From: Perna viridis
Taxonomy: Eukaryota
Length of the DNA stretch: 64,000 nucleotides
Direction: 5' to 3'
Assembly: GCA_037379345.1 (NCBI GenBank)
Contig: CM074517.1
Location: 3,968,001 to 4,032,000 of the forward strand
Of this stretch, positions 6,500 through 64,000 are shown one piece after another. Made by a program: the position numbers and the translations under genes. The notes beneath the pieces were generated by a model. It was not told the DNA's origin. It saw nothing but the letters and a program-made list of their open reading frames with translations, and did not search any database. Position 1 is the first letter of the stretch; every line of letters begins with the position of its first letter.

Positions 6500-9400
6500 A
6501 TTAGTATAGATAAAAACCATGCACTTAGACTTTTGTTATATTGTTATATTGTTATATTGTTATTGAGAGAGCCATTTGTAATTCGGTAAACAATTTTTGT
6601 TCTGAGTATGCGGACCCGACCAATATTGTAAACATTTCCTTTGTCAGTTTTATTATTCAAATGCTACTCTTATATCGGGACGTGAAACTAATCCTGGTCC
6701 ATTTATTGACGGTAGTGAGACTGCCTCGCAAGGTGATATCTCTGAATTCTAAGATATTTCAAGCTTATTTGAGACATTTTCCACCTCGTTATCTTTTTTG
6801 ACATTTAAACATCCAAAGTATAGTTCCAAAGCTAGATGTAATAACTGCTAAATATTCTGAATTCGATATTTAATCATTCACTGAAACTTGGTTGAATACT
6901 TCTGTTGCCGATGACGAGTTATTACTCTTAAATTATCATAAGCCTTTAAGGTCAATATTCGTACCAACAAATTTTTGTATGGGACTTTTTTTTACATTCC
7001 TCCTGGCAGTCCTGCTGGCATTTGGAGGATGATATAAATTGTGATCATATAATTATTACAGGCGATTTTAATGACAATCATTTCTTATAAACCTCAAAAT
7101 AAAAAGAGTGCACCAGGTTTAGTCTGCAACAACTGGTTGAAGAGCCTACAAATTTTACGGAACATTCTTCCTCACTCATTGACTTGATAATTACAGATGA
7201 TCAGTATTTTTACCATATGTTACTGTTGGTCCTCCATTTCTCGAACAAATTCGTCATCACTGCTCTGTCATTGGCTTTATAAATTCCCCCAAACCAGTTA
7301 AAAAGACGTATAAACGTAAAGTTTGGATTTATAACAAGGGCAATTTTGATAAGTATAGGCATAGGTCGACTAATAAGGATTGGGACAATATTCTGAACTC
7401 TAATGATATAGCCAAGATTATTAGCGATATAACCAGACATATTTTACATGCAGCGGACTCGTGTATTCCGAATCGTTTTGTAACTATTCGGAAAATAGTC
7501 CTGCATGGCTTACAGATGATCTAAAAAAAACTCATTCTGTCGAAAACCCGTATTCTTGCTAAAGCAAAACGTTCTGGTAGACCGGCTGACTGGAACAAAT
7601 TTAAGAAAATAAAGAAATAATGTAACGTAAAAAGATCGTGATAAATATCGTTCAGATTTACTTAATCGTTTATCAGCCGATAGATGCTCAGCCAAATCTT
7701 GGTGGACAATCTGCAAGAAGATATCTGGTATCAAACCGTTACATTTAGACGTACCACCATAACTAATTGGAGATAGATTAGTAGTCGACGACGTCGACAG
7801 AACAAATTGTCTTAATCACTGCTTTGCTTTGCAGACACAACTAGATGACAAAAGAGCTACACTATCTGACATTACAATCAATCGAGAACATAAACTAAAA
7901 ATATCGTTTTAGATTAAACTGATGTCGGAGATGTACTTTCTATTTTGAATATTAATAAAGCCTCTGGACCTGACTTCATAAATCCTCGAATTCTATTTTA
8001 AAATACCCATTTTGTAAACTATTTAATATATCATTACCTTCGTTTTACTTCCGGAATGAATGGAAAAATGGTTCTCCGGACGAAGTAAAAAACTAACGAC
8101 CTATCTCACTACTTAGCGTTATTTCAAAATGCATGGAGAGACGTATATACAAACATGTACATGACTTTTTAATACATAATAAAGTAATTACTCCCAGCCA
8201 ATCGGCTGGCGACTCTGCCATTAACCAGTTAATATGTATATCCGACGCTATCGGGAAAGCTCTAGATAATGGGAAAGAAATAGGAGTTGTCTTTTGTGAC
8301 ATAAGTAAGGCATTCAAGCGCGTATGGCATAGAGGTCTCTTATTTAAACTCTAAGACTACGGTATTGTGGGGATCTGCTACACTGTTTCAAAAATTATCT
8401 TTCTGGAAGGGTACAAAGGGTGATTCTTATTGGTGGAAGTTCTGACTGGATATATGTTGAAGCTGGTGTTCCCCACGGCTCCATATTAGGACCCTTGCTG
8501 TTTTTGTTATTTATTAATGATTTTGTAGAATGATAATAATGCCAGTGTTAAACTGTTTGCAGATGCCACGAACATTTATATAATAGTAGAAAATTCCGCA
8601 ATCGCCGCTGACATATTAAATAGAGATCTTGAGAAGACTCATAATTAGTCATATAAGTGGCTAGTTAAATTTAACCCACAAAAGACGGACACAATAACCA
8701 TATCCCGTAAAACCATTATCTAAGATGCCTGACAAAGTAAAACTAACAGTTGGCGGTAAGGACCACAGTTTAATTTATACAAAGCAATATTCAATTAAAA
8801 TATCAAAATCAATTCAATCAGTCATTATCAATCAATATCAAATATCTGCAAATCGCAAGATGAAAATGTCCAAATGGTTACCGCAAAATGCTGGTATGGC
8901 AACCAATTCAAATAAATATTCATCACCAAAAATCACGGTAATGTAAAAATAAGATTTTGATCACCGTGGGAAACACAAGTGAGATATCCAAACCCCTTAA
9001 ACAAGCTGTTAGCACAGCACGAAGTCTATAACATGCAGCGAATGTGACTGTACACCATACACAATGAGCGAGTCCATCTTTATTATGAAAATTGTCGAGT
9101 CCTTTTGCGATTAACTGATCGAGTCCTCAAGGGATGAAATATACTGAAACTTCATTTCTGGAATCCAATCTTCATATTAAACTGTGGCCGAATTTTTGAT
9201 AATAGTTGATAACTGAACATTTGATGATATACAAATGAGAGGATCACTGATAAATCAGAAATGACAAACAAAAAACAGCATAAACCAGGAAAAATTCAAG
9301 AGTTCTCTTTCTTTGGGCACTATTTTAATGATACATGTAATATGTTAAAATGTGGCATATCTTTAAGTGTGGCGAGGTGGGAGGGACTTCAAAAATCGTC

Positions 9401-40911: not shown

Positions 40912-40957
40912 ATGGGTTTCGAAACATGTGGCCCGAACGAGGTGATGGTTGTTTCGG
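40912..40957 (+). CDS. FLOT1: FLOT1 coding exon 1 ([16 protein letters not shown])
   Basis: ATG in gccgtcATGG context; donor G|GTAAGT, phase 1. Confidence 0.95.
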
Positions 40958-43900
40958 GTAAGTTTACTTGTATTAATTTCTGTTGAGTGAGGTTGCACGC
41001 CGGGCAATGCTTTAGTTGTTGTCATGTAATTATATGTTAATTCAATAATTTATGCGACGAAGTTACATCCACAGCCACAGGCATGCCACTTGAAGTACCA
41101 AGCATTGATAGAAACAAGTGGCCGTTGTTAAATGAATACTTGGTGTTATGCCATAAGGTTATATGTTTGGAATAGGTGACTTTGAAGAACATCAGAGTTG
41201 AGGATAATTGAATTTCAACTTCTTCTCTCCTGACGTCCTGTAACTTGATATGCACTAGGGGGATCCAGCTACTATTTATACTGATATAGATAGTAGTGAT
41301 TTATCAATGTTCCATGTATAATGAATTTTGATTATTTACATTAAGATAGATTTGGTAAGAACAATTTTAAGACTTTCTCCCTCCAAAACAACACAAATCA
41401 TTCTGTCGATAACAAAAAAAATCATAATTTATGTTGAAATTAGCAATATACAATGTAAATTATGAAGAAAATCTATATTATAAGTTGGTAATCAATTGGT
41501 GAGTATGAATACCCAAAATATAATAATTTGTGCCAAGAATACTTGAAGATTTTTAAAACTTGTGCATGGAACAAGTTCTGCGACCCCCTTAAATTTGTGC
41601 ATTCTTTATCAGTCGTGATTGTACAGTGAAATCGGACAATTTGGCCTGCTGACAACTCAGCCCGTGTCTCTGGACCACTACGACTGTATATTCAGGAACT
41701 AGGACCATCATATAAGACAACTCTGACCATCATACAAGACAACTCAGCCCGTGTTGAATGAGTGCTATGACTGTATTTAAGGATTGTTTGGATACTACGT
41801 CCACATACCACATTCCAGACGCCTTCGCCAAACTATGTGTGGTAGTGTTTACAGCCTGACCATCTAGACAGTGACTTTATGATTTGATTGTGTAAATGTG
41901 TTTTAAATAAACTCAGTGCTTTGTTGTTACATATATTAATAATGTGAATGTTGATGTGCTTCAAATGAACTCAGTACTTTAGTTACTTTGTTTACATGTA
42001 TTGATTATGTGAATGTTATGCCTTATTTGTTGATCTTAATAAACATATCGGTAATTTGTAGCTTTACATATTTTTATTGTATGAAAAAAGTCTCAATATA
42101 ATAGCAGAGAAAATCCACACTGACTGAGCCAGTACCAAGAAAAAAAAATCCGCACAAACATGAAAAAAACTACACAGACAAATGGTTACACAGGTTAATA
42201 TTTCAATCAGGAAATAAACAGATCTATCCATGTAAACTGTTTTCACAGAATATTCCTACATGCATACACTTCAAAATAAGACCCAGTTCACTTAGAGGTC
42301 CTGTAACACGGTCCAAGTTGTCCTGTAACACAGTATTATTAGTCCTGTTACACGATCCAGTGGTCTTATAACATGGTCCGATTAGTCCAGAAACATGGGC
42401 CAAGTGGTCTGGAGAGACAGTCCGAGAGGTCGTGGGGAGTGTTCTGGGGGCTGAGATGTCTGTAATTCATGGTACAGTATTTTGGTATTCACTCTTCTCA
42501 CTTCATTATCCTATAAATTTGTACCTATTTAGTTAAAGGGGTTCAAACTCCTCTGGTTGCAAAAATTTACCAAGTTAAATAGGGAAAAAAAAGTGACGAA
42601 ACACATCTATTGGATGCTCTCACCACATCAAAGCTTAGTCATTCTATAAAATAAGCCTTTACTTGACCCTTTGATCTATTAGAATGCCTAAGTTATGGCA
42701 GTCATTTCTCAAATATTTAAGCATGACATTAGTTGACACAACCAAGTCTCATACATGTACATGTATGTGCCCAAGCCTTACTAGCAAGGAACTTAGTGTA
42801 CTTACTGAACAAAAGAAAAAAAAACGGATATGTTGAAATGTACATTTTTTGTAACAAATGCACTGGTGTATAATCTAAATACAAAATAGTTAATACCTTC
42901 AGAGACCACCAAAAGCTCTTCAATAAGTGTAAACACACCTTTAAGTAAGCTCTAGAAGACCCAACATCAAAATCCATGGCAATTGAAAGATGACAATTTT
43001 TATAATGACACAAAAACATCTTTATGACCGATATCTTCAGATTGTGGACAGGAGCATGGCCTTAATTATCCCCTTTAATGTAAGGTCAAAAATGAAATAA
43101 AAAAAAAACACACCTGTGACCATAAAATTTGTCTTTTTACATCAAAACTGATTCAAAAGTTACTGGTAAGCAAATTTTCCTTCCTGTCAGTGTTTGAAAG
43201 CCAGTAATTGTCTCATACAACACATTTTTTTCCTTCATTACAACCTTGACATGTTTGTTTGGTTTGAAGTTAAAGTAAAAATGAGTGTTCCAATTGGTTG
43301 GTATTTTTCAAGAAAAATTCCGCGTATTGGATTGCTTGTATAGAAGTGGGATACTCACAGACTATGCACTTGCAATGCAAATACCTAGGTTCATTGTGTT
43401 TTTGATATTACATCAACATTGAGGGTCATAAGACTCAGACCTTTGCATGCTTAATGAATAGTTTTTTTTCATTGACAGGTTGCTGTCATGCAAGATCAAT
43501 ATTTGTTCCTGGAGGTCGAGTGTTTGTCTGGCCAGTCATACAGAAATTACAAAGGTATATTTTATGCATTTATTGTTTACACAAAAAAATACAAGTTCAA
43601 AATACATTGTATATGGAGAAAAAATTATTAAAACAAATTCATTACATGCATATACAAATGTATGAATATGTGCAATGTACAAATGTACATTAGAAAAACA
43701 TTTTATTTTGATACTTGTCATTAACCAGGTATTAAAATTTCAGTAAAATCATTAGTCAAGATCTGTTTTCATTGAATACATGTATGTGTGGAAGCTCAGC
43801 AGCAGGATATTTATACATTTAAATATAAAAAGTAAACGATAAAATGCATTGGTGTATTTTCCAAATAAATTCCAATAATCACATGAACATTGAAGATGTT

Positions 43901-46900
43901 GTATGACTTTTATCCAAAATGCACACCAGAATGAACCTGAATACAATGACATTGTCAATAGAGAGTCCTCATGTTTACACCTCACATGGTGTGGCTGTAT
44001 CTGTCACAGGTGTGGCACAAGTAAGTCACCCCCCATGTACATACATTCTTCATGTACAGATACATGTATGATATAGTTTGGAAAAGAAGTTGAAATATTG
44101 AAAAAGAATTGATTTGGATCAGCTATCACTTCAGTGTATTAAATTTGAAAATTTTTATGGTATAACAAAAAAATAAAACAATTCAATTCCTGTTGAAGCA
44201 AGGATTGCATCCATACTTAATTTATACATGTACCTGTATACAAAGGTCCTCTTGATGTACTAAGGAATGGTTTAGTGTAGAACTCTTTGTACATGCGTAC
44301 TTGGTTTAAAGATTATATGTTAATGTACAACAAGGAATGTTTGTCGTTGCTGTTAACAGTAGTACAATGCTTATTGTTACTTTATTTTGCTGTCGCTATT
44401 CGGTCATTGTAGTTGGTTCTACTTACATGTAGTATCAGTTCATGTCTTTATTTAAGTCATTGCTGCATTCTTCCAACTACAAAGTACACTGTACAATTTG
44501 TACTTCCCCCCATTTTCTTATCAAAATGCTGTCTATTTTGCTTCTACATTAAGTTGTGGTAAACCATGCATATAATTGACTTGTTACTTTGCACAAGTAT
44601 AGAATGCAACTGCAATATTCATCAATGGTACATTTGCATGTACATGTAAATACATTTGTACCTTCTTGAAAGAAAAGAAGAATTTTACCACATTTGACTA
44701 CCTACACGTACATGTACATGATACACATAACTAATATACTTGTACATGCACATCATTTTCTGATATTTTGCAAGGTTTTATACATGTACATGTGTATTTA
44801 AAAATTGTACATTACTTTTTATTGTTCAAGAACATGGAAACTTTCTTTATAATTAAATGAATTTCACCCTCATTAAGACTCAATGGAACTATGTTTGAAA
44901 TTAGTTATCTTATTTTAGAAAAAAATAGGAATATATTGTCTAAAAATAGGAATATATTGTCTAAAAATAGGAATAAATTGTCTAAAAATAGGAATATATT
45001 GTCCAAAAAGAGTGTCCCTAACTAAGTATTTGTATTGTACCTTAAGATGTACCTTAAACTCTGAAACAACTTGAACAAAACAAGGGCTAATTATTTCTGA
45101 ACATTTAGTCAGGATGTACAGTTGCTGCACTTGCACATGATTTGGTACTCTTTAGTGAGGTACAAAATGTTAATTTGTAGTTTTAAATTTTGAGTATTAA
45201 GTTTTTACTTTTGTTTCAAAATGTGGTATAAAAAGTAAGCTTTAGTGTTGGCAATAAATTTCAATGTTTCCTGTTCTTTTGTTCATCAAGATATATTGTG
45301 AAGTTGCATGTTAGTAATTTTACCTAATTTCATATTATTTACATTGAAATAATTTGATTTTCAGACTATCCCTTAATACCATGACATTACACATAGAAAG
45401 CCCTAATGTGTATACACAATTTGGGGTAGCTATTTCTGTCACAGGTGTGGCTCAGGTGAGCAGAAATGATCTCTGACCTTTCTTTCTTTTCAAACTTATT
45501 CTTTACTATACCAACTAGAAGTTACATGCAATAGCAGACATTGATACAACTTTGTCTTTGTTAAATATTGTAAAAAAATTATATATTGTCAGTGGTGTTG
45601 CAAACTTCAAATAAATGGTGGGGAGGAGTCAAGCTTCACTTTAATCAGGTGGGTTTGTACGAGTGTGTGGTCATGTTACATTGAATGTATATTTCTAATA
45701 AATATTGTGTATTTTGGAAATTGGTCATGTTTGCTACATGTAGACTTCAAGGGTGAAGAATAAGTTAAATGTTCTGCATTTTAAAGCTGTTTGTCACTTT
45801 TGTAGTTCCATTCACTATATAACTTGTGCATGTTACATACTTCCATTGCTAGTTACATACATAAGTTGCTGGTAGATTGATAGAAATCTATGGAGTATGG
45901 TGTAGGAAATATATATACATGTACATGCTTCAAATTTGTAGTATATTTTGTAATATACACGTACATGTATGGACAGTATACATGTATATCAAAACACAAT
46001 TGTAACATTTGAATTAATCATTACATTTGCTCATTACACAAGAATTAAAAGAATCTTCCATAGTTTGGCAATTGCTTCTGCAAAAGTTAAAATTTATGCC
46101 ATTAGGATACGCTTGTAATAAATGAGAAGAGATTTCATTCAAGTGCATGTACATGTAGCTTGAAGGATAACCTTTTACTTGTTTAATGGATTGGAAATAA
46201 TATAGTCATACTGGTTAAAATTTCTCTACCTACGTCATGTACTCCATAGATTTCTGAATTTTGCATGTAATTCCATTATGAATAGAAGGAGGTTTGTTTT
46301 CAGGTTATCCTTAAATCTTCTGACATTACCAATAGATAGTGCTAATGTTTATACTCAGCTTGGTGTAGCTGTATCTATTAAAGGTATAGCTCAGGTAAGA
46401 TAAAGTGTTCTAGCTAACATACTGAGAAGCCATTTTAGGGGGGTTGGTGGTGATAGGTCTTGATGTCTCTTGCTAAAATAACAGGGTGGAAGGCCTTTGT
46501 TCAATGTGGATGAGTTGGAAATTCTTGATGTCCTTTACTAAGTGTTAAGGCTAATATGAATGAAGGTGGTCTTATCTCAGATAGGATAGGTTAGGTAAGA
46601 GGACTTGATACTCTCACAAGCCAACCTTTGATATGATAGGTCTTCCCCCCTTCTCACATTACAGTACTACAAAGGCATTTTTATTTACAAATGAGGTATC
46701 TCGTACAGTGTAATAATCAATGTCAAGGGAAAGAACTGCATGTGTAATAATCATCAGTACATTTTCTGCATTTCCTGTTATTTTTACATTATGAAGAAGT
46801 CTCCACTGAGTTGATAAGGTCACCCATTTGCCTGCCTTTTTTATTCACATGGTAACTTGTACATGTAAGTAGTATGTGTCATTGTAGCATAAGGATAAAT

Positions 46901-49900
46901 ACCAATTAAACTCAAATCTATGTTTCTATTGATTGTTTGGCATTGTATTTTTTATTCTTCCAAGCACTGGGAAAAATAGTAGTATTTCAACACAAATACA
47001 AACTACATATATGATAAATGTACATGTAGTGTCTGGTGAATACACTTTCTGTTTAAAGGAAAAGTGGTAGGAAAAGTATTGTGGCAAAAGGTCATTTTAT
47101 ATTAAATGACTTTATTAAACCTTTAACTCATTATCTATTCCTTTCTGAGCCAAGTTAAGTTCTTGATGTGGTGAAAAAGTTAGCTTGAATGCTTGTTGAT
47201 TCTAAACTTATATTAAGAGATACATATAGCTTACACATTCAGAGTTCAAATAGCCTTTCACAATGGCAAAGTTCATCCCACCTGCCCATAAGTTTGTTGT
47301 AAGGCCACCCCATTGAATTATTTTCTTTTGTCTAGGCAGGGTGGTTCTTAAATCAAACTCAAACTACTTCTATATACATGTACATAATTTTGTCTAAGGA
47401 AAAAGAAAACTGCTATAATCATATAAAATTATTAAATTTGATATATTATAGTGAAAATTCTCTCCCCAACCATTCAATTATTAAAACAATACATAAAGGA
47501 ACAATGTGGGAACCTATGTATTAAATATCAAATTATAGTGAATAGTACAAATTTATCTTGGATTAAACTGGTGTCTCCTTCATTCTTTTAAGTCAATCAA
47601 ATCCATAGATGATAAAGAGATAAATTCTAACATACACTTAAAAGCTTGACTATGAGTTATCCCCTCTAATTGATCAAGCCTCTTTTTCCTCCTAAATTGT
47701 CAACAAAGAGAGGAAATACAAGATATTATCCTAATAAGTCCTGGAAAGAAGATTAATTAGGAAACTTAATGATAGAGATATTCAGTTCTAATCCTGTTAT
47801 AAACATACGTGTAGAATATAAATGTCCTTAGTTGCAACTTATGCCAGTCTCCATACACGGTTCAGTGTAGTACAAAAAAAAAACATACATGTACATTTTG
47901 TAGTGCTTTTTTGCAGAGCTACTGTTTGAGTATTGTGTCATACACATGTATTATATGAACTTTAGTTAGAAAGCACTATAAGCACTTTATTCTATTTTAT
48001 GTAAGATTGTTTTTGTTTGTTGGGGTTTAACGCCTGAGCAGCAATATTTCAGCTATATTCAGGTGAATTTTTTAGTAAGAGACAATTCTCCTAGAAACTA
48101 AAATGCAATTTCAAACATTGTAAGGACAACAGTGCTAGTTAATTATATGATCATTTGATATCTTCAATATGCTTCCTATGAATCCTATGAAATTTGAACA
48201 TGTTTAAAAACATTGACCTAAGGCAGTTAGTCTGATTAAAGTAAAACTAGGTATGCTATGCTAAACATCTTGTCTTTTGGTAGTGTTTTCATTAATAGAA
48301 AGAAAGGGATTAAAGCTACTTATTTACATGATACTGTCAGGAATTAATTGAAATCCTTCACCAGCTATGCCTAATAACTACATTTGTTATAGAAACACTG
48401 GCTGGTCATGTGACTAATTTATTATATTTATATCATTTAATTAATCTGATCTTTTTATACATGTAGTACTGGGAAGCTCTTTATACATATAATACTGGGA
48501 AGCTCTTTATACATGTATAGAAATAAATAATACACACTGATATAATAAATTCCTTTTAGTAGAATTGCACAGTAAGAACTTATAAATTATATAATTTCAA
48601 TTTCTTGTTGATAAGTCAGATGCATCTCTATTATACATTCAATACAGTGTTTGTAACATATCTTACAGTTAATTTATATTTGTTAATGATTATAAATTCA
48701 GCTTCTGTTTCATTGTTACATGTACATTATACATGATAAATGCAAAAAAAAAAATTTTTGTTATATCTATGTCAGTTGTTTACTAAATTTCACCAAACCA
48801 ATGTAGTGATTGTCATAATGATGTTAATTTTTATTACCCATGTCAGGTGAAGATTCAAGGTTCCAACCAAGATATGTTAGCATCAGCGTGTGAACTTTTC
48901 TTAGGCAAGAATGACACTGAGATTAGAAAAGTTGCCCAAGAAACACTTGAAGGACATCAGAGGGCTATCATGGGAAATATGACTGTTGAGGTTCATATCA
49001 TTCGTATTTAGCACTTTCATACTGTAACCTTGTGGATAAACTACAAATGTACATATACAAGACTTTTGGTCATGTAGAAGTTATAAGTTTCTTTCAAGTT
49101 TAGTATTAGTTTCAACATTTGAGCCTGGGCAAGAAATAATTATTGAAATTAGCTGGATATTTTGAGATTTTCAAGTTTCATGAGTTATATAACCCTTTTC
49201 CCTATGATTCTGTCTGAATAATTAATTGCTTGACATTTGGCATGGCAGAAATTCTAGTGATCATCCATCTGTTTTAGGAAACCCACATAAGGAACATAGC
49301 ATACTTGTTTTTGATTGGTCAACTCAGTTCAAGGTCAAAAGAATGCAACACAATCACAAAACAACCAATTGTTATGACTACTTTTTCATATCATTTGTTT
49401 TTTGGTTTCACATCATCTGAGGGGTAATATAATTATAAGTATCTTACAATCCAAGAAGTGAGTAAAAGAACCAAATCATAGAGAATACAAACAAATACAG
49501 GTACATGTAGAAATGTATTTTATTAGGATTTCCAAGCTTAAATAAAGTAAATCTTTACAGATTTCTGTATGGCAGAAAAATGGAGGGTTTTGAGTATATT
49601 AAACTAAGAGAACTAGAGATCATTTAATGCTTACTACTGCATTCATGGTAGCATTTCGATATTCATGCTTTTTAAAGAGTAAAATATAAAGAGATACCAG
49701 TTTGCTAGGCATCTTATAGTTCTAGAAAATTTATGCTTTTGGCAGGAAATCTACAAAGACCGTAAGAAGTTTTCTAAAGCTGTTTTTGAAGTGGCATCGT
49801 CAGACTTGGTAAACATGGGTATCTTTGTAGTCAGTTATACCATTACAGATATTAGAGATAGCGAGGTATGTAGAAGAAACAAGAATTCTTTTTATTTAAA

Positions 49901-52900
49901 GATAGAATGTATGTTAAATGATTTTTCAACTGGAGAATAATGATATAATGGCTTGTATGATACTGCTAAGATTTCTACATACTAAGTACTATTGTACTTG
50001 TAAATTTGTTCTGTTTTAGAAATTTTACAAAACAAAACAGAATCACTATGGTTATATTTTAAAAGTGGTAATGTTTAGCACCTTATAAATGTATGTAGTG
50101 CCTAAGTGATGCATTGTGATTTTACGAAATCATTCTAAATGCATTGCGTATTCATTGTTTTTTTCTTTACAATTTCCCTGAAAGTAGGTGAGTAGTCACT
50201 TTAGATGACTATATGGTTGTTTTAACTTTTAGCAGCCCATCTAAGTATTGTATCTAGGATGTTGGAAATAAGCGTTGTAACCTGAGCAATTGGCTACAAC
50301 CTAAAAATTAATTGAATATTTAAGTAATTAATATAATTAAAGTAATTGTTGATCCCAATTTCATTTAAAATTATAAATTTCACAATAGAAAGGAGAACTG
50401 TTCAAATGTACAAGATAAAAAAAACCACTGTAATATTGAATTGGAATTACTTAGAATGAAAAAGTTTCATGATATTACTATGGTACAACTTTATCAACCT
50501 TAGTATAAAGTATCCATAAGAAAGATCCAGTGTTATTTGTATTGCGTTACGAATTTCAGGGATACTTGCATGCCTTGGGTATGAAACGTACTGCAGAGGT
50601 AAAACGTGATGCAAGAATCGGTGAAGCAGAGGCTCAAAGAGATGCTGGAATTAAGGTGAAGTTTTTATGTTTTTCAGGAACCTTGCAGCCTATTGTCACA
50701 GTGTTGATTCACTGCTTGCTGCTGGTTTATGTTGTATATTTAAACTGTTACTATTGATTCACTAACATTTATCATCAGGGGTATTTGAAGTCACTTGGTT
50801 TAGCCCGTACTGCACAAGTTAAAAGGGATGCTCGTATTGGTGAGGCTGAAGCCCAGAGGGATGCTGGTATTAAGGTACCCTGTACTAATATCACTGTTGT
50901 GTCTTATTATTTTAGTGTCACACAAATAACCATTTCATACATAAAATTGGGATGGGATTTTCCACAGATTCACTTATTTACTTTAGATTTTGTCAGTTTC
51001 GGCTTCCTTGTTGTTCCTTGTATCTCATCCCAGATTAAATAATATAGATAATATTCACATTCATCTCTCACATGTTTATTACCCAAATATATTCCATCCT
51101 GACCCTCTATGTCACCTTTTAAAACACTCTAGAGTCAACATTCTTTGTTGGATGTTGACTATACATGGTTTATTATTAGTCCTGAAGAAGATCTCAGTAC
51201 CCTAGCTTTACAAGATGATAGGTCAAATTCACAGGAAATTAAGACCTCTGGGATGTAACATTTTGTGTTGCTCTTATCATTTAATAAATAAGTTCTTTGA
51301 TCAATTTTACCTCAGAATTCATACATTAATGTTTCATTTATACCACAATCCTCATTATAACAGTTTCCAGTTTCATCCTTAAATCATTAAGCACTTATTG
51401 GGTATCAACCCTTCAAATGTATTTAATTTATATAATAATACTTGTCTGTGCTTTTTCTTTAAATTGTTCATTGACATTCGCATTGTTTTGTCTAAGTACA
51501 ACTGAAGAAGTTTTTTTATCTTTAAATAAATACAACACTGTATAACAAAACTGGCCTTTGTGTATGGAATGGATTACTGTGTATTATGGTAGTTAGCTGT
51601 ACCTTGCATTCTGAGACCCCTCCTTATTGAATTTTTCCTATGATTTCATTGGTTGAATATTTGATCCTGATTTGGTTTGCTTGGTATGTGAATGTAATGC
51701 TATTGTTATGTTTAAATACCATATTCTCATCTACTTTGATTTGCATGCACACCTTTGTTTAAGAACATATGTAAAAGTTTTTTTTTTTTTTGAAATTAAC
51801 GAATGATACTTAATCATGCGTATCAGGTTGAAAGTATAATGCAGGTTAAAAGTTGTTCAGGATGTTTTTTATTGAAATGCAACACGTAAGTTATCAATGC
51901 ATTCTCTTTTTATGATCAAAACTATCACTTTCAGTTGATCAGACTTCAAAGAAGATAGAATATTTCTGAAATTCAATTCAAATATACATACAAGCAGAAC
52001 TGCTGAATGTATTATTCAATGTTCACTCTGATTAGTCTGAATGTATCATTCAATGTTCACTCTGATTAGTCTGAATGTATTATTCAATGTTCACTCTGAT
52101 TAGTCACTGCTGAATGTATTATTCAATGTTCACTCTGATTAGTCTGAATGTATTATTCAATGTTCACTCTGATTAGTCTGAACGTATTACTCAATGTTCA
52201 CCCTGATTAGTCACTGCTGAATGTATTATTCAATGTTCACTCTGATTAGTCACTGCTGAATGTATTATTCAATGTTCACTCTGATTAGTCTGAATGTAAT
52301 ATTCAATGTTCACTCTGATTAGTCACTGCTGAATGTATTATTCAATGTTCACTCTGATTAGTCACTGCTGAATGTATTATTCAATGTTCACTCTGATTAG
52401 TCACTGCTGAATGTATTATTCAATGTTCACTCTGATTAGTCACTGCTGAATGTATTATTCAATATTCACTCTGATTAGTCTGAATGTATTATTCATTGTT
52501 CACTCTGATTAGTCACTGCTGAATGTATTAAGGCTAACCTTGGCTGGTATTGATATTTTTAAAACATACATGTATTACTAACCTTTTGTAAAACCATAAT
52601 GTAACAGCTTGGAAATTTCTACTTCAATTAAAAACGCTTGAATATGGAATGAAGTGGGTTTTCCCCTCCATTTTTATCATTATATGTTGTGAGCATGTAC
52701 TATATGTATTTTCATGTTTTTCATTCATAACAATATGAATCATTTGTGTTCCTTATATTCTTAGATTGTTCGATTTTTGACATGTTATAGGAAGCACAAA
52801 CCTGGTTCTAAATTTTACTAACACTAACTTGACAGTTCAGTAGAGATATGTAGAACAATATAGAGAGTGTATCAGAGACAGACTACTCTCTCTGGAATTA

Positions 52901-55900: not shown

Positions 55901-58157
55901 TAATTTTGATTTTATAATTGTTTTTCACAGGAAGAGAATTATTTTGGAAGCTGAAGCAGAGGCTGAATCCATTAAGGTAAGAAAGAAAAGCACATCTTTT
56001 AGCCAGGCTACCCAGTAGTGGCAGATTCAGGGGTCATTGACCCTCTGTCTTCAAAATCTGTTGATCTAACCTGCTACCTGACTACTCAACATCATGCCAA
56101 TAAACCATGTTGCTGGATTTTGTAGAATAGTTGGTAGAGTTGCATATGATTTATGGTAATTGCATCTATTTGATGAATATTGTCTAGAGCATAGATTTTA
56201 TTGCACAAGCTTCAGTATGCAATATTATACTATGCACGTGATAATATTCATCAATATCCTCTTTACTATATAGTAACAAATTTATGACATCCTTTTGTGC
56301 TTGTGTGGAAACAATACATCATTAAAAAAAATGATTAAGATAGTGACCTAGTGTTATTACTGATCTGAAGGTTATATTGAAATTAGTGCTAATTCTATAT
56401 CCACTCTATCATTTTATTCCTGTATATTTGACTGGTCATTATCCATCATCTTGTCTTAACAAACGAACAAGTTAAAAACATAGAAAAAAATAAACCTTGT
56501 TGTCATTTGTACACCATGATCATCATAATTGACCATGACACTAGATATTTTTTTTATGAATGAGACAGTAGTAGCTAAGTTGCGTCAGTTGTGATTTGTG
56601 TTCTGTTTGAAACAACAAAGTTTAATTTTACAGCTGAGAGGTGATGCTGAAGCCTACTCCATTGAAGCTAAAGCTAAGGCCGAAGCTGAACAGATGGCCA
56701 AAAAAGCTGATGCATGGAAAGACTACCAGGATGCTGCTATGATTGATATGATCCTGGAAACTCTACCAAAGGTAGGTTGGAGGATGGTGACAGAGGGTTA
56801 TATAGGACTAGAAACTCTACCAAAGGTAAGTTGGAGGATGGTGACAGAGGGTTGTATAGGATTTCAAGAAACTTTACCAAACGTAAGTTGGAGGATGGTG
56901 GCAGAGGGTTATATAGGACTTCAAGAAACTTTACCAAAGGTAAGTTGGAGGATGATGGCAGATGGTATGTAGGACTTCTAGAAACTCTACCAAAGGTAAG
57001 TTGAAAGATGGTGACAGAGAGTTATATAGGACTTCAAGAAACTTTACCAAAGGTAGGTTGGAGGATGGTGACAGAGGGTTATATAGGACTTCAAGAAACT
57101 TTACCAAAGGTAAGTTGGAGGATGATAGCAGAGGATATGTAGGACTTCTAGAAACTCTACCAAAGGTAAGTTGGAGGATGGTGACAGAGGGTTATATAGG
57201 ACTTCTAAAAAACGTTACCAAAGGTAAGTTGGAGGATGGTGACAGAGGGTATGTAGGACTTCTAGAAACTTTACCAAAGGTAGGTTGGAGGTTGTATGGC
57301 TGAGGGTTATATAGGGCTATCTGGAAATTTTACCAAAGTTAGGTTGGAGGATGCGTGACTGAGAGTTTTATTGGACTTCTAGAAACTCTTATAGAACTGT
57401 AATAAGAAGCTGATGCTGAACAGCTTTAGCATGTTTTGTTGGAGAATACAAGTCAGGTGCATTTTTGCAGATATTTAGAGTAGGAAAAAACTAAAAATAC
57501 TTCTCTGGAAAAAAGAGGAAACTGTCAGTAATATAATATTTAACATTTCTTTTATAATTGTAGATTGCTGCTGAAATTTCTGCTCCTTTAAGCAGCACAA
57601 AGAAGATAACAATGGTATCATCTGGCAAAGGATCAGTTGGTGCAGCCAAGGTCACTGGAGAAGTCCTGGACATCATGGAAAAGATCCCATTAGTTGTAGA
57701 AAACCTTACAGGCATCAACATCTCAAAGGTACTCTTAATCATTTTTTTATAAGTTTTATGGTATCAGACCTGATGCATTGTTCAACAACTGATAAATGAA
57801 AATTGACAAAATTATAAGTATGTAACTAAAGTCTAAGCAGTGAATTACAAAAACGCAACGAAAATCAAGTTTGACTCTTACTGCATACCTCTTAGAAGGT
57901 TTGAATAAGTTACCGGTAGAGAAATAGTACGTAATGTGTAGTGAATTGATATAAAGGTTATCACTGCTGTACTGTTACTTTTGTGATGTGTGTTTATATA
58001 TGTTCATGCTTGTCTAATTTATAAGGCATTCAAAAAGTAGTACTGTACATAAAATTTATAATTTATACAGAGTTTTTTGATGCATGCTTCATGTTAGATT
58101 CTGTATTTGAGTTTTTGTCTTTTTTAGAACATCAAGGCTGCCACAAGGAGACCGTGA
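40912..58157 (+). CDS. FLOT1: Flotillin-1 (SPFH/band 7 family), 12 exon positions, 428 aa per isoform, with alternative exons 3a/3b/3c and 6a/6b
   Basis: Join 40912-40957, 43479-43554, [43930-44020 | 45365-45455 | 46304-46394], 48847-48990, 49746-49865, [50560-50655 | 50779-50874], 54524-54676, 55599-55780, 55931-55976, 56634-56771, 57564-57728, 58128-58157 = 1287 nt, all GT-AG with compatible phases. Motifs [58 protein letters not shown] match flotillin-1. Confidence 0.97.
41285..42530 (+). repeat. Family C copy in FLOT1 intron 1, interrupted at about 41620-42468 by a MITE-like insert with GACAACTCAGCCC sub-repeats
   Basis: 41285-41610 matches family C; its tail (cattatcctat) resumes at about 42475-42525; insert ends gggctgagatgtc, inverse of its left sub-repeats. 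Confidence 0.6.
43479..43554 (+). CDS. FLOT1: FLOT1 exon 2 ([25 protein letters not shown])
   Basis: ttttcattgacag| acceptor, AG|GTATAT donor, phase 1 to 2. Confidence 0.95.
43930..44020 (+). CDS. FLOT1: FLOT1 alternative exon 3a ([30 protein letters not shown])
   Basis: 91 nt, ccag| acceptor with weak pyrimidine tract, CAA|GTAAGT donor, open frame. Confidence 0.9.
44919..45005. repeat. 21-bp tandem repeat AAAAATAGGAATATATTGTCT x4
   Basis: Direct reading. Confidence 0.9.
45365..45455 (+). CDS. FLOT1: FLOT1 alternative exon 3b ([30 protein letters not shown])
   Basis: 91 nt, ttttcag| acceptor, CAG|GTGAGC donor, open frame. Confidence 0.92.
46304..46394 (+). CDS. FLOT1: FLOT1 alternative exon 3c ([30 protein letters not shown])
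   Basis: 91 nt, tttgttttcag| acceptor, CAG|GTAAGA donor, open frame. Confidence 0.9.
48007..48067 (-). mobile_element. 5'-truncated SINE tail (same family as 54946-55420)
   Basis: Reverse complement matches 55363-55415; imperfect tttta(t)gtaaga duplication on both sides. Confidence 0.75.
48847..48990 (+). CDS. FLOT1: FLOT1 exon 4 ([11 protein letters not shown]...[17 protein letters not shown])
   Basis: 144 nt, phase 0-0, weak donor GAG|GTTCAT. Confidence 0.95.
49746..49865 (+). CDS. FLOT1: FLOT1 exon 5 ([10 protein letters not shown]...[11 protein letters not shown])
   Basis: 120 nt, phase 0-0, GAG|GTATGT donor. Confidence 0.95.
50560..50655 (+). CDS. FLOT1: FLOT1 alternative exon 6a ([32 protein letters not shown])
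   Basis: 96 nt, tttcag| acceptor, AAG|GTGAAG donor. Confidence 0.92.
50779..50874 (+). CDS. FLOT1: FLOT1 alternative exon 6b ([32 protein letters not shown])
   Basis: 96 nt, consensus-like branch point CACTAAC at 50760-50766, catcag| acceptor, AAG|GTACCC donor. Confidence 0.92.
51999..52530. repeat. 34/39-bp dimorphic minisatellite, about 14 copies
   Basis: Unit CTGAATGTATTATTCAATGTTCACTCTGATTAGT with or without CACTG. Confidence 0.95.
53510..53662. repeat. 44-bp tandem repeat, about 3.5 copies
   Basis: TGATTAATTAAGGCTTGTGGCTGAATTGGGCCTTcAAACT... unit. Confidence 0.85.
54524..54676 (+). CDS. FLOT1: FLOT1 exon 7 (EALAEEKRM...SELAYDLQ)
   Basis: 153 nt, phase 0-0, QRDFELKKA motif. Confidence 0.95.
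54946..55420 (+). mobile_element. Full-length SINE-like retroposon in FLOT1 intron 7
   Basis: 14-bp target duplication TCATTTCATACCTG (54932-54945, 55421-55434); (CAAT)n tail; central GCACGTTAAAGAACCC motif. Confidence 0.85.
55599..55780 (+). CDS. FLOT1: FLOT1 exon 8 ([11 protein letters not shown]...[19 protein letters not shown])
   Basis: 182 nt, phase 0-2, coiled-coil flotillin region. Confidence 0.95.
55931..55976 (+). CDS. FLOT1: FLOT1 exon 9 ([15 protein letters not shown])
   Basis: 46 nt, phase 2-0, strong splice sites. Confidence 0.95.
56634..56771 (+). CDS. FLOT1: FLOT1 exon 10 (LRGDAEAY...MILETLPK)
   Basis: 138 nt to first donor AAG|GTAGGT; further donor copies lie downstream. 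Confidence 0.93.
56757..57390 (+). repeat. 54-59-bp minisatellite spanning the FLOT1 exon 10/intron 10 junction, about 11 copies
   Basis: Unit GAAACTYTACCAAAG|GTARGTTGGAGGATGGTGACAGAGGGTTATATAGGACTTCWA. Confidence 0.95.
57564..57728 (+). CDS. FLOT1: FLOT1 exon 11 (IAAEISAPL...LTGINISK)
   Basis: 165 nt, phase 0-0. Confidence 0.95.
58128..58157 (+). CDS. FLOT1: FLOT1 terminal coding exon (NIKAATRRP*)
   Basis: Strong pyrimidine tract acceptor tttttgtcttttttag|; gives total length expected for flotillin-1. Confidence 0.8.
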   Translation, partial: NIKAATRRP

Positions 58158-60599: not shown

Positions 60600-63497
60600 C
60601 TAGGTTTTTCTGACCAAGTCTGAAGGAACTGTGTCTATATTGCAATTGTCTCCCTTGCAACAGAAAGAACAGAAGAAATGGGAATCCACTAAATGTTGGA
60701 CATCGTACTTCAGACATTCATTTCTGTCTGCACTTTCGCTAATCCAGTCCTTTAAACATTCAGCCTGTGTTGCACACCTACAAAAGTCAGTAATTAATTG
60801 TATTACAATGTCTTGAATGTTAAATGTCGCTCAATATCTTGTGTACCTATGACTACATGTGAAGACAAAAGATAGTCACTCAAATATTTTTCTTTCTTTT
60901 GAAAAATAAGTTGGCGTTCAAGATTTATGTGTGTTTGCGTTTATTGTGAGTTGTTTAATTTAGATAACTAAAAATGGGTAATGGTAGATCTTCAGGAAAA
61001 CAGTGTGCGAAATCGTTAGTATCGTTACACCACCAGTAAATAAAAAAAATCCAAACGGACGTCTATATGCTGATGAAATATGTTACTCCTAATTTCCACA
61101 AAAAGTAGTTATCAATTTAGCATATAATGACAAATCAAATAGTTTTATTTCAAGCATTAAACTAGAATGACTTGTTTGATAAGATATTCCAGTGAGTTTA
61201 AGCTGAAAATGTGCAGCCTTAATAAATAACCTTGAAGTGCTATGATTCCCTTATCAATACTATGTTTCCAAATCTCAAGTCGATTGCATAGCCATGAAAG
61301 TTAAGCATTCCAAGCAAGAGTCGGAAGGAAATTGTGTATGCCTGTTTTTATGCCCATTAGACTGGCAGATTTGACAAAAGATGAATGCAAAATAGTACAT
61401 AGTATCTCATAAAACGCGAGAAATTCTATAAACTATTTTTCACATAATTAATAGGATAGTTGATTAAAACAATTCAATTCATCCATGACACAACCTTTCC
61501 CTTTTTACAATAATCCCTTGTATTTAAAAAGAAATTCAGAACAAGCCGAAGAGATTTCCGGGACAAGAAAAAAGTCTGAAAAAAGTAATTTGCATGTATG
61601 AATTGGAGGATATCACCCAAGTGTGAATTTCTACTTTGTTTTTTTTTTATGGAACCCATAAATGACTTCAGTCGGGGAACTGCATTGATGCCGGTGGATT
61701 AGGGCTTACCACTACAGAGGATCTGATGTTACTCCCGTTTTTTATTTACTGGAGTTCATATTGCTAATGATATTATATTTTTGGTTACATATTGTTTTCC
61801 TTATCTTCGCTACCTATACTTTATGTATTAAGATTTACTTTGTTTCTTGTTTGCATGCTCAGGCAAAACACTCGGATTTGGTGTATCTGCATTTTTTTTT
61901 TGGCAGATATGAAATTTAACTGGTTATAATTATTTTAATGCTTGTAGCATGTGTTACATCTCAGTTGCTTACATTTATTTAAAACCTTTGTCAAAGCTTC
62001 GCACTACATAAGCAAAGAAAACGAGTTAGCATGCATGCATACATCAAACGTAACGGAAACTTAGAAGAATCTTAAGTATACCATTATTTATCAAGGAGAA
62101 ACAAAATATCTGGATGGTTTGAAATAAAATCAAGAGTGAAGCTTGATTGTGCTATTTTAGATTTTCTATTCCTTCTAATCGTAAATTGGATAAAGCAATG
62201 GGGTCATATCTGTTTCGAAAATTTTGACTTTTCTTGGAAACGAAACACAAACAAAGATAGGAAAGTTGGAATATGACCAGGACAACAGAATAAAATAGAA
62301 AGGTAGTGTAATACATTATGGGTCCTTTGATGCAGAGAGAGCTATGGTAAAATTATATTCATCCTGTCTTTAGATGACATACTCTCTGGTGATATCTACA
62401 GTTAAAGTAAAATTCCACGCAAATGACGTACCGTCTAGTAACATATCTACTACCATCTCTGAGGTTTTCTATATCATTAATACAGTATTGGTGCTCTGGT
62501 TTGGTACACGTCTGGGAGCCATGACTTCTTTCACATATAAATTTAGGTCCACGACAGAGATGGCATGAAACTAAAATAAAATGAAGCTAAGAAAACCTCT
62601 GTTGTCTTTTTTATCATTGTAGACTCTTATCCTTATCTTTGAAAAGGAAAAAAAATGCGTTGTTTACTCCATGCACACACAAAATATTTATTTTTTTCAA
62701 GAGTTTTTTCACCTTACAAACATTTTAAGGCCACACAATATTACAAAAAAACAACATCTAACCAACTACTACTTTTTAAGAACTATGTTAAACACCCTTG
62801 AGATGGTTTCAAAAAGTTTTCCAATTACAGGTAAATTTCAAAAAATGTTTTTTTCTTAACAACATACTTGGGTTTGGAGGAAGTGTCGTTGTTGGTATAG
62901 TTGTGGTCGTTGGAGTTGTAGTCGTTGTCGGTGTTGTGGTTGTGGTTGGGGTTGTTGTAGGTGTCGGTGTTGTGGTTGTGGTTGGGGTTGTTGTAGTTGT
63001 CGGTGTTGTAGTGGTGGTCGGTATTGTGGTTGTGGTTGGGGTTGTTGTAGTGGTCGGTGTTGTGGTTGTGGTTGGAGTTGTTGTAGTGGTCGGTGTTGTA
63101 GTGGTGGTCGGCGTTATTGTAGTTGTCGGTGTTGTAGTGGTGGTCGGTATTGTTGTAGTTGTCGGTGTTGTAGTGGTGGTTGGTGTTGTAGTTGTTGTAG
63201 GTGTTGTTGTGGTCGGTGTTGTAGTTGTAAGTGTTGTTGTAGTTGTTGGTTTTGTGGTTGGTGTTGTTGCCGGCGTAGTTGAGGGGACCAGCATTGTTGT
63301 TTGTTTTGTAGTTGTTGGTGATGTTGTGGTTACAGATATCGTAATTGATGTGACTGTTGTTTTAACAGGGGTAGGCATTGTTGTGGTTGTTGTTGTAGTC
63401 GAAAGTGTGGTTGTTTCTAAAGTTGTTGGTGTGGTAGGTGTTGCTGTCGTCGGCGTTGATGTTGTGGTAGGGGTTGTAGTTGTAGTAGGTAAATTTG
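60600..63497 (-). CDS. 5'-partial gene: Thr/Pro-rich mucin-like protein with C-terminal Ly6/uPAR (three-finger)-like Cys domain
   Basis: Minus-strand exons 63497-62868 (PTTTTT repeats, phase 1-1), 62570-62432 (SCHLCRGPKFICERSHGSQTCTKPEHQYCINDIENLRDGSRYVTRR), 60777-60600 (CATQAEC...FCSFCCKGDNCNIDTVPSDLVRKT*); GT-AG sites and phases agree. Confidence 0.88.
62885..63300 (-). repeat. Coding 18-bp tandem repeat (PTTTTT)n
   Basis: Seen in ORF 62809-63378; GT-rich on + strand. Confidence 0.9.
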
Positions 63498-64000
63498 CTA
63501 TAGAAATGATATTTTATTTACATTACTTTGATCTATATTTTCTCCAATTTATTTTAAAAGTCAGAGTATTTTCATTGTTGGATAGAAATGTCCTAACATT
63601 CTGTGCAATTTAAAGGTTTTATGAACAGGAAATAAATACGTTTACAGTACACGAAAAAAAGTGTATCAAACTACCATTCGAGTTCCGGTAAGATTGTAGT
63701 GCTCTTCTTAGTGATTATAAAAGAGGTAATAAGTTTTTTTTTAAATGACCAAGAAAAAGGGAGCATTACATTAATGAAGTCATTTTGAACTAGAATGTCA
63801 GTTGTTTATCAAACAATTGAAAGGTCTTTCCCTTGAAAACTATCCCTTTGTAATATACACGTAATGACATTTGGTTTGATACATAACATGCTACCTTCTA
63901 CAAAAGTTTGGGTTTTTTTTGCACTTGGTAATGTAGTCAAATGCAATTGTCGATGTTTCCATCATGATTTTGGTAATGTAAGGTCGTAGTATTAACTCGA

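Follow-up and report, generated by a model that had tools for sequence, protein, structure and literature searches.

Three tandem versions of exon 3 in Perna viridis flotillin-1 form a probable mutually exclusive exon cluster

Flotillins form 44-subunit cages on membranes. To our knowledge, work on these cages has taken every flotillin to be one protein and has not taken splice variants into account. A 64,000-nt stretch of the Perna viridis genome (assembly GCA_037379345.1, contig CM074517.1, positions 3,968,001 to 4,032,000 of the forward strand; hereafter the window) raises the question of whether a flotillin gene may carry alternative versions of one and the same coding segment—and if so, how these are used. 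Inspection of the sequence alone had led to the prediction that exon 3 of flotillin-1 exists here in three tandem copies, of which every productive mRNA must carry exactly one. We argue below that the locus is, with high probability, a flotillin-1 cluster of mutually exclusive exons that arose by tandem exon duplication, with one of three exon-3 versions included per mRNA.

The three copies, designated 3a, 3b, and 3c, reside between the constitutive exons 2 and 4 (Table 1), and their coordinates, splice sites, stop-free frames, phase (2-0), and peptide identities proved to be exactly as originally predicted. Exon 2 terminates in AG, the first two bases of the Arg-41 codon; each copy contributes the one nucleotide that finishes this codon (AGA, AGA, and AGG for 3a, 3b, and 3c, respectively), followed by 30 codons. 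The encoded peptides agree at 23 of 30 positions between 3a and 3b, at 20 of 30 between 3b and 3c, and at 17 of 30 between 3a and 3c, with 61–66 of 91 nucleotides being identical in the pairwise comparisons. Among the differences, Lys replaces Thr at exon position 26 of 3c. All three are adjacent, homologous exons of equal length and equal phase. When the 3b peptide was searched in six frames against the whole 723-Mb genome, only three matches were returned (with E-values of 1e-12, 8e-8, and 1e-5), which together account for 3a, 3b, and 3c themselves, arguing that the cluster is not a product of chance. Neither a fourth copy nor a relic of exon 3 emerged from a low-threshold scan of positions 43000-49000. 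Further downstream, the gene continues with more exons to about 57.7 kb, and pieces of it on the + strand are visible in the list of open reading frames.

Table 1. Flotillin-1 exons forming and flanking the exon-3 cluster (positions in the window)
Feature	Position	Strand	Description
Exon 1, coding part	40912..40957	+	From ATG to the last base before a GTAAGT donor
Exon 2, constitutive	43479..43554	+	76 nt; AG at 43477-78, GT at 43555-56
Exon 3a, M-type variant	43930..44020	+	91 nt, AG/GT-flanked, stop-free
Exon 3b, default variant	45365..45455	+	91 nt, AG/GT-flanked, stop-free
Exon 3c, regulated variant	46304..46394	+	91 nt, AG/GT-flanked, stop-free
Exon 4, constitutive	48847..48990	+	144 nt, phase 0-0; GT donor at 48991

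To which flotillin do these exons belong? Exon 4, used as a query, retrieved flotillin-1 proteins, and all three 30-residue peptides aligned to residues 41-70 of human flotillin-1 (for 3b, in two cryo-EM structures, 9bq2 and 9l3g, with E = 3e-6 for 9bq2_B), whereas flotillin-2 gave a poorer match in the PDB (E = 0.08–1.5). The exons in the window are moreover colinear with residues 1-419 of a 427-aa flotillin-1-like protein of Mytilus, and related proteins bear Band_7 and Flot domains. Given that its sequence resembles flotillin-1 more closely than flotillin-2 and follows the full-length protein in order, the gene is an orthologue of flotillin-1 (also known as reggie-2). When the Pfam Band_7 and Flot profiles were run across the genome, the short exons of the gene were missed, and one weak Flot match fell within the window. 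A search of the representative library with exon 4 returned mostly fragments.

As to the position of the variable segment in the protein, a 2025 review places the SPFH1 subdomain of flotillin-1 at aa 1–43 and SPFH2 at aa 43–160 (PMC11775717), and the membrane-inserted, lipidated part of flotillins is SPFH1 (PMC13000311, PMC11260169). Exons 1 and 2 encode SPFH1. Because the boundary between the two subdomains lies at residue 43 (PMC11775717), exon 3, which encodes residues 42-71, marks the start of SPFH2: it provides the first strands and loops of this subdomain, just past the membrane-inserted SPFH1. The prior expectation that exon 3 opens the second SPFH subdomain is hence in line with the published domain limits.

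The lengths of the exons impose a strict rule on how they can be combined. Because the last codon of exon 2 is left with just two of its bases and exon 4 begins in phase 0, whatever is spliced in between must add 1 (mod 3) base, and a 91-nt exon does precisely this (91 mod 3 = 1). Inclusion of zero, two, or three variants entails an early stop, within 1–12 codons: splicing of exon 2 straight to exon 4 produces AGG followed by TGA, and 3b or 3c, when read second after another variant, runs into a stop at codon 4 or codon 12, respectively—as seen when the exons were translated one at a time in the shifted frame, rather than in spliced models. These stops bear out the claim that the reading frame confines each productive mRNA to one variant. 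Since they arise within a few codons, wrongly combined transcripts would probably be cleared by nonsense-mediated decay.

Do actual transcripts comply with this rule? We consulted Logan contigs of four runs (X1, X2, X9, and X10) from four studies. The kind of these runs is not on record; they were taken as RNA because exon depth (roughly 350–1200x) greatly exceeded intron depth (≤10x) and every exon joint was of the GT..AG type in all four. Joints departing from the last base of exon 2 (43554) reached 3a, 3b, and 3c, those from 3b and 3c landed on the first base of exon 4 (48847), and a loose end of the contigs upstream of exon 2 corresponded to the end of the exon 1 sequence. The short side of each joint spanned 27–30 nt, which we take to reflect contigs that end where the paths of the variants part within exon 2. 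Two further joints (44189-48006 and 44800-46147) were not GT..AG and touched a dispersed repeat or ACATGT palindromes; these were taken as assembly artefacts.

Exon 3b was spliced to both of its neighbours in four of four runs, at a joint depth of about 750–2100. For 3c, both joints were present in run X10 only, where this exon reached a depth of 316 vs. 749 for 3b (about 30% of the summed 3b and 3c contig depth), and exon-like depth over 3c was absent from X1, X2, and X9. Judged by contig depth in the four runs, 3b is the default and 3c is turned on in a subset of samples, although Logan contigs lose rare variants and carry no tissue labels. Exon 3a had its upstream joint alone, at low depth: a single contig from run X2 (depth 9.6) connected exon 2 to 3a—hence, the 3a acceptor is used—and read through 3a into the downstream intron. 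The Logan contigs of the four runs contained no joint between 3a and exon 4 and no exon-like depth peak over 3a. The junctions predicted for each variant were therefore recovered in full for 3b and 3c, and not for 3a. Joints between two variants, or from exon 2 to exon 4, did not occur in the contigs of the four runs, from which rare forms could escape; all such forms would be unproductive. Taken together, exon 2-3b-exon 4 and exon 2-3c-exon 4 appear as alternatives, with neither a 3a-3b nor a 3b-3c joint in the contigs, in agreement with the mutually exclusive use that had been proposed.

This expression pattern could also be accommodated if 3b were the only functional copy and 3a, perhaps along with 3c, were relic duplicates that are spliced now and then as noise: 3b dominates in all four runs, 3c is missing from three of them, and 3a surfaces as one low-depth junction contig running into the intron. 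We nonetheless deem this explanation very unlikely. For 3c, it is countered by the depth share in X10, by the presence of both junctions, and by annotated orthologues in Mytilus. For 3a, the evidence against it comes from relatives, namely from their gene structures and from the substitutions separating them from P. viridis.

We examined exon order in the genomic loci of Mytilus californianus, M. galloprovincialis, Haliotis asinina, and Crassostrea angulata. Compared with the three copies of P. viridis, the 91-nt AG/GT exon is present in four copies in M. californianus (plus one partial relic at 7855-7908 of that locus), in five in M. galloprovincialis, in four in H. asinina, and in a single one in the oyster C. 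angulata; the Mytilus loci harbor an extra b-like copy that is missing from P. viridis. The first copy in the window, in Mytilus, and in H. asinina is of what we call the M-type, an exon that starts with Met, contains a ..YT-x-[HQ]-G motif, and is bordered by distinctive splice sites, namely a donor of the form CAA|GTAAGT and an acceptor, ..C(C/T)CAG, that lacks the U-run adjoining it in the other copies. Exon 3a, with its ..CCAG acceptor devoid of an adjacent U-run and its CAA|GTAAGT donor, shares this style with copy 1 of both Mytilus and Haliotis.

A maximum-likelihood tree was computed from 51 exon peptides, whose 30 columns leave most forks open, yet three groupings stood out. Exon 3a paired with Mytilus copy 1 (support 100/97) within an M-type clade (95/86) that further comprised sequences from Haliotis, Bradybaena, Liolophura, Sinanodonta, Mercenaria, Dreissena, and Mya—that is, the M-type exon is found in mussels, abalone, clams, a land snail, and a chiton—and 3c joined the last Mytilus copies (96/88). 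Both 3a and 3c thus have Mytilus orthologues, and the 3b peptide is identical to that of Mytilus copy 2. At the protein level, databases (mostly RefSeq) hold isoforms of the same length that differ only in residues 42-71 for M. californianus, M. trossulus, and M. galloprovincialis, and likewise for Haliotis rufescens, H. cracherodii, Bradybaena similaris, Sinanodonta woodiana, and the brachiopod Lingula anatina, in which three exon-3 versions are combined with two exon-2 versions. The M-type itself is present in annotated mRNAs of Haliotis, Bradybaena, Sinanodonta, Dreissena, Mercenaria, Mya, and Liolophura, as would not be expected of a relic.

The substitutions between species point in the same direction. 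Relative to Mytilus, synonymous sites are saturated and introns are unalignable, with matches reaching no more than about 13 bases past the exon edges. Under a binomial test against a 3:1 ratio of non-synonymous to synonymous sites, 3b and M. californianus copy 2 (30/30 aa identical; 0 non-synonymous and 13 synonymous differences; P = 1e-8), 3a and copy 1 (26/30 aa; 5 non-synonymous, 17 synonymous; P = 3e-7), and 3c and copy 4 (23/30 aa; 14 non-synonymous, 13 synonymous; P = 0.009) all departed in the direction of conserved peptides. Across the Mytilus comparisons, the identical 3b peptide is encoded with 13–17 synonymous differences, and dN/dS of 3c is about 0.23. These counts, together with the orthologous clades, indicate that 3a, 3b, and 3c have been maintained across species, that all are under purifying selection, and that 3a is not decaying: against the relic explanation, it has retained its frame, its splice sites, and 26 of 30 residues in spite of saturated synonymous sites. 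The outcome that was to speak against the prediction—other exons missing or decaying in related species—is accordingly not what we observed, given that 3a and 3c are conserved in Mytilus.

The near absence of 3a from the contigs might, alternatively, mean that this exon serves mainly as a regulatory 'poison' exon, which upon joining with 3b or 3c would introduce a premature stop and lower the output of flotillin-1. The stops at codon 4 of 3b and codon 12 of 3c upon double inclusion are compatible with such a role, as is the origin of the lone 3a junction from an incompletely spliced molecule. However, a poison exon could do without a conserved peptide, and it is the amino acids of 3a that are conserved while its synonymous sites are saturated; the contigs contained no joint of 3a with 3b or 3c; and annotated full-length isoforms of other molluscs carry the M-type as their only exon 3. 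We therefore regard a primarily regulatory 3a as extremely unlikely. With neither a 3a-exon 4 joint nor a depth peak in the contigs, it is from conservation that we infer productive use of 3a in P. viridis. Within the mutually exclusive cluster, 3a is the ancient, pan-molluscan M-type, which is rarely used in the material sampled and is presumably set aside for one specific stage or type of cell.

If one variant is included per mRNA, how is it chosen? In other clusters, such as those of Dscam or 14-3-3 xi, long-range RNA pairings between a docking site and selector sequences compete with each other, and comparable structures could enforce exclusivity in flotillin-1 in addition to the frame. 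One candidate is a perfect 16-bp inverted repeat between 3b and 3c (45882-45897 / 46240-46255) in single-copy DNA; as the region is single-copy, a MITE origin of this stem was ruled out. The many other inverted repeats found here are palindromic ACATGT sequences of low complexity. Between the window and Mytilus, no conserved intronic block extended beyond about 13 nt at the exon edges; in a comparison of five species, no conserved element was found 3′ of exon 2 or 5′ of exon 4; and duplex energies of candidate docking and selector regions resembled those of dinucleotide shuffles (z between -1.1 and +1.0). A conserved docking site complementary to selectors of the individual variants was hence not detected, with the compared species being either too diverged (saturated synonymous sites) or too close (the two Mytilus) for covariation to be informative. 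An Rfam scan of 43400-49100 gave just two sub-threshold miRNA-like matches. On balance, we consider competing RNA pairings unlikely. In place of conserved docking and selector structures, splice-site strength and trans-acting factors would set the choice within the cluster: the M-type acceptor, lacking an adjacent U-run, may keep 3a off unless an activator is present, and 3c may be turned on by sample-specific factors.

What would such a choice achieve? The variants are predicted to change loop and surface residues of SPFH2, with the Thr-to-Lys exchange in 3c as an example, and the altered residues might tune how flotillin-1 packs against flotillin-2, or against further partners, within the 44-subunit cage. 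If a regulated choice of the SPFH2 entry segment is true, one gene would give rise to chemically different cages; in this regard, 3c is undetected in some samples and makes up about 30% in another, 3a has persisted from early mollusc evolution onward, and human FLOT2 offers a parallel at the same exon. A possible, albeit rather doubtful, extension holds that flotillin cages have a recurrent 'tuning knob' in the strands and loops that open SPFH2. In this view, one and the same 91-nt exon would have been multiplied and retained in mutually exclusive form in flotillin-1 of molluscs and brachiopods and in FLOT2 of vertebrates, with a molluscan M-type/L-type split that predates the separation of chitons, gastropods, and bivalves, and the rarely used 3a would build a specialised cage restricted to a narrow stage or kind of cell.

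The cluster is not new to databases, as flotillin-1 triplets or larger clusters already figure in the automated annotation of relatives. Because of this, and because tandem mutually exclusive exons are well known, the finding comes as a modest surprise. Mildly new are how deep the M-type/L-type split goes within molluscs and the conserved, distinctive splice sites of the M-type, as is the absence of the M-type copy from retrievable isoform sets of Mytilus. The concern that annotation may overlook copies was justified in part: the four RefSeq isoforms returned for M. californianus use copies 2, 3, and 4, which are thus annotated, and none uses the 3a-type copy 1. It is in annotation that the practical value of the window lies, with the 3a-type copy missing from the retrievable Mytilus RefSeq isoforms. 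In the literature, we found no report of mutually exclusive exons in the flotillins of any invertebrate, and none for flotillins in general apart from what Hatje et al. (2017, Mol Syst Biol, PMC5740500) list for FLOT2 in their supplement. Flotillin is unmentioned in the main text of a study on human tandem duplicated exons (PMC9741552), and the words isoform and splicing are absent from the 2025 flotillin review (PMC11775717).

A close known counterpart is human FLOT2. The original prediction had pointed to a mutually exclusive pair at the homologous exon of vertebrate FLOT2, and such a pair is indeed listed for the human gene as cluster 1201 in the supplement of Hatje et al. (PMC5740500). There, two 91-nt exons of phase 2-0 encode 30 residues each and map to the initial strands of the SPFH domain (1WIN); one member was a new intronic candidate, and expression values are given by tissue and cell type. 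According to these supplementary data alone, the resemblance extends to the homologous exon of a paralogous gene, to exon length, to phase, and to the number of residues. Unlike this vertebrate flotillin-2 pair, P. viridis possesses a triplet, and it does so in a molluscan flotillin-1. Among relatives, the cluster is matched in that same-length isoforms differ only in residues 42-71 in the species listed above and 91-nt AG/GT exons are clustered in the genomes of Mytilus and H. asinina. In Lingula, the three versions group apart from the molluscan types, and a second pair exists at exon 2. More generally, the tandem arrangement of exons of equal length and equal phase is reminiscent of classical mutually exclusive clusters, including arthropod Dscam, 14-3-3 xi, and MRP1 and metazoan muscle myosin heavy chain (PMC3912159), and the inclusion of one of several tandem homologous exons per mRNA also characterizes tandem duplicated exon substitutions in humans (PMC9741552). 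The flotillin-1 cluster departs from the classical ones in that conserved docking and selector elements are undetectable and the frame alone renders other combinations unproductive, and it shares with them its antiquity and its maintenance under purifying selection.

Besides the exon-3 cluster, the flotillin-1 gene of the window appears to contain another set of homologous exons in tandem, the pair 6a and 6b (see table). Pairs of isoforms equal in length and distinguished by the 6a/6b segment alone are annotated for Mytilus (four species), Haliotis, Bradybaena, Biomphalaria, and Littorina.

Features in the P. viridis window and in the Mytilus californianus flotillin-1 locus (L001)
Feature	Position	Strand	Description
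Inverted repeat	45882-45897 / 46240-46255		perfect, 16 bp; arms 342 nt apart, between 3b and 3c
Short dispersed repeat	48012-48067		about 55-70 nt; intron upstream of exon 4
Putative exons 6a and 6b	50533-50655 and 50752-50874	+	tandem homologous pair; residues about 160-191
Tandem repeat	56757-57390		directly 3′ of exon ending near 56777
Long low-complexity open frame	62798-63613		Val/Gly-rich on +, Thr/Pro-rich on -
Exon-3-like partial relic	L001:7855-7908		18 residues; between copies 3 and 4

The 401 nt around the inverted repeat between 3b and 3c are single-copy in the genome, which excludes a dispersed MITE as its source. In X2—the only one of the four RNA runs to contain an exon 2-3a joint—position 45882 reads G instead of A, a change predicted to convert an A-U pair of the 16-bp stem into G-U. 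For the short repeat preceding exon 4, a first look at the genome gave more than 1200 candidates, some of them standing in tandem on contig C1; RNA-contig depth over it reached ~9000, with many loose ends diverging there, and it accounts for a false joint, 44189-48006. The tandem repeat keeps an open frame and its recurring units share a 10-letter peptide string. The long low-complexity frame, at the end of the window, is a simple-sequence repeat.

In the brachiopod Lingula anatina, three versions of exon 3 combine with two of exon 2 (residues 19-41), so that six flotillin-1 isoforms are annotated (P0171, P0172, P0175, P0176, P0182, and P0206 in our protein searches). In the exon-peptide tree, these exon-3 versions did not group with either molluscan type, be it M (3a-like, first in mussel and abalone clusters) or L.

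Within the molluscs, Crassostrea angulata has one exon 3 only (L003:3168-3258) and no M-type copy in its flotillin-1 locus, so this lineage either lost the cluster or never expanded it; oyster flotillin-1 isoforms differ in length at places other than exon 3. Copy number also varies among close relatives: where M. californianus carries the partial relic, M. galloprovincialis possesses an intact fifth copy, a difference suggesting that exon-3 copies have recently been gained or lost within Mytilus.
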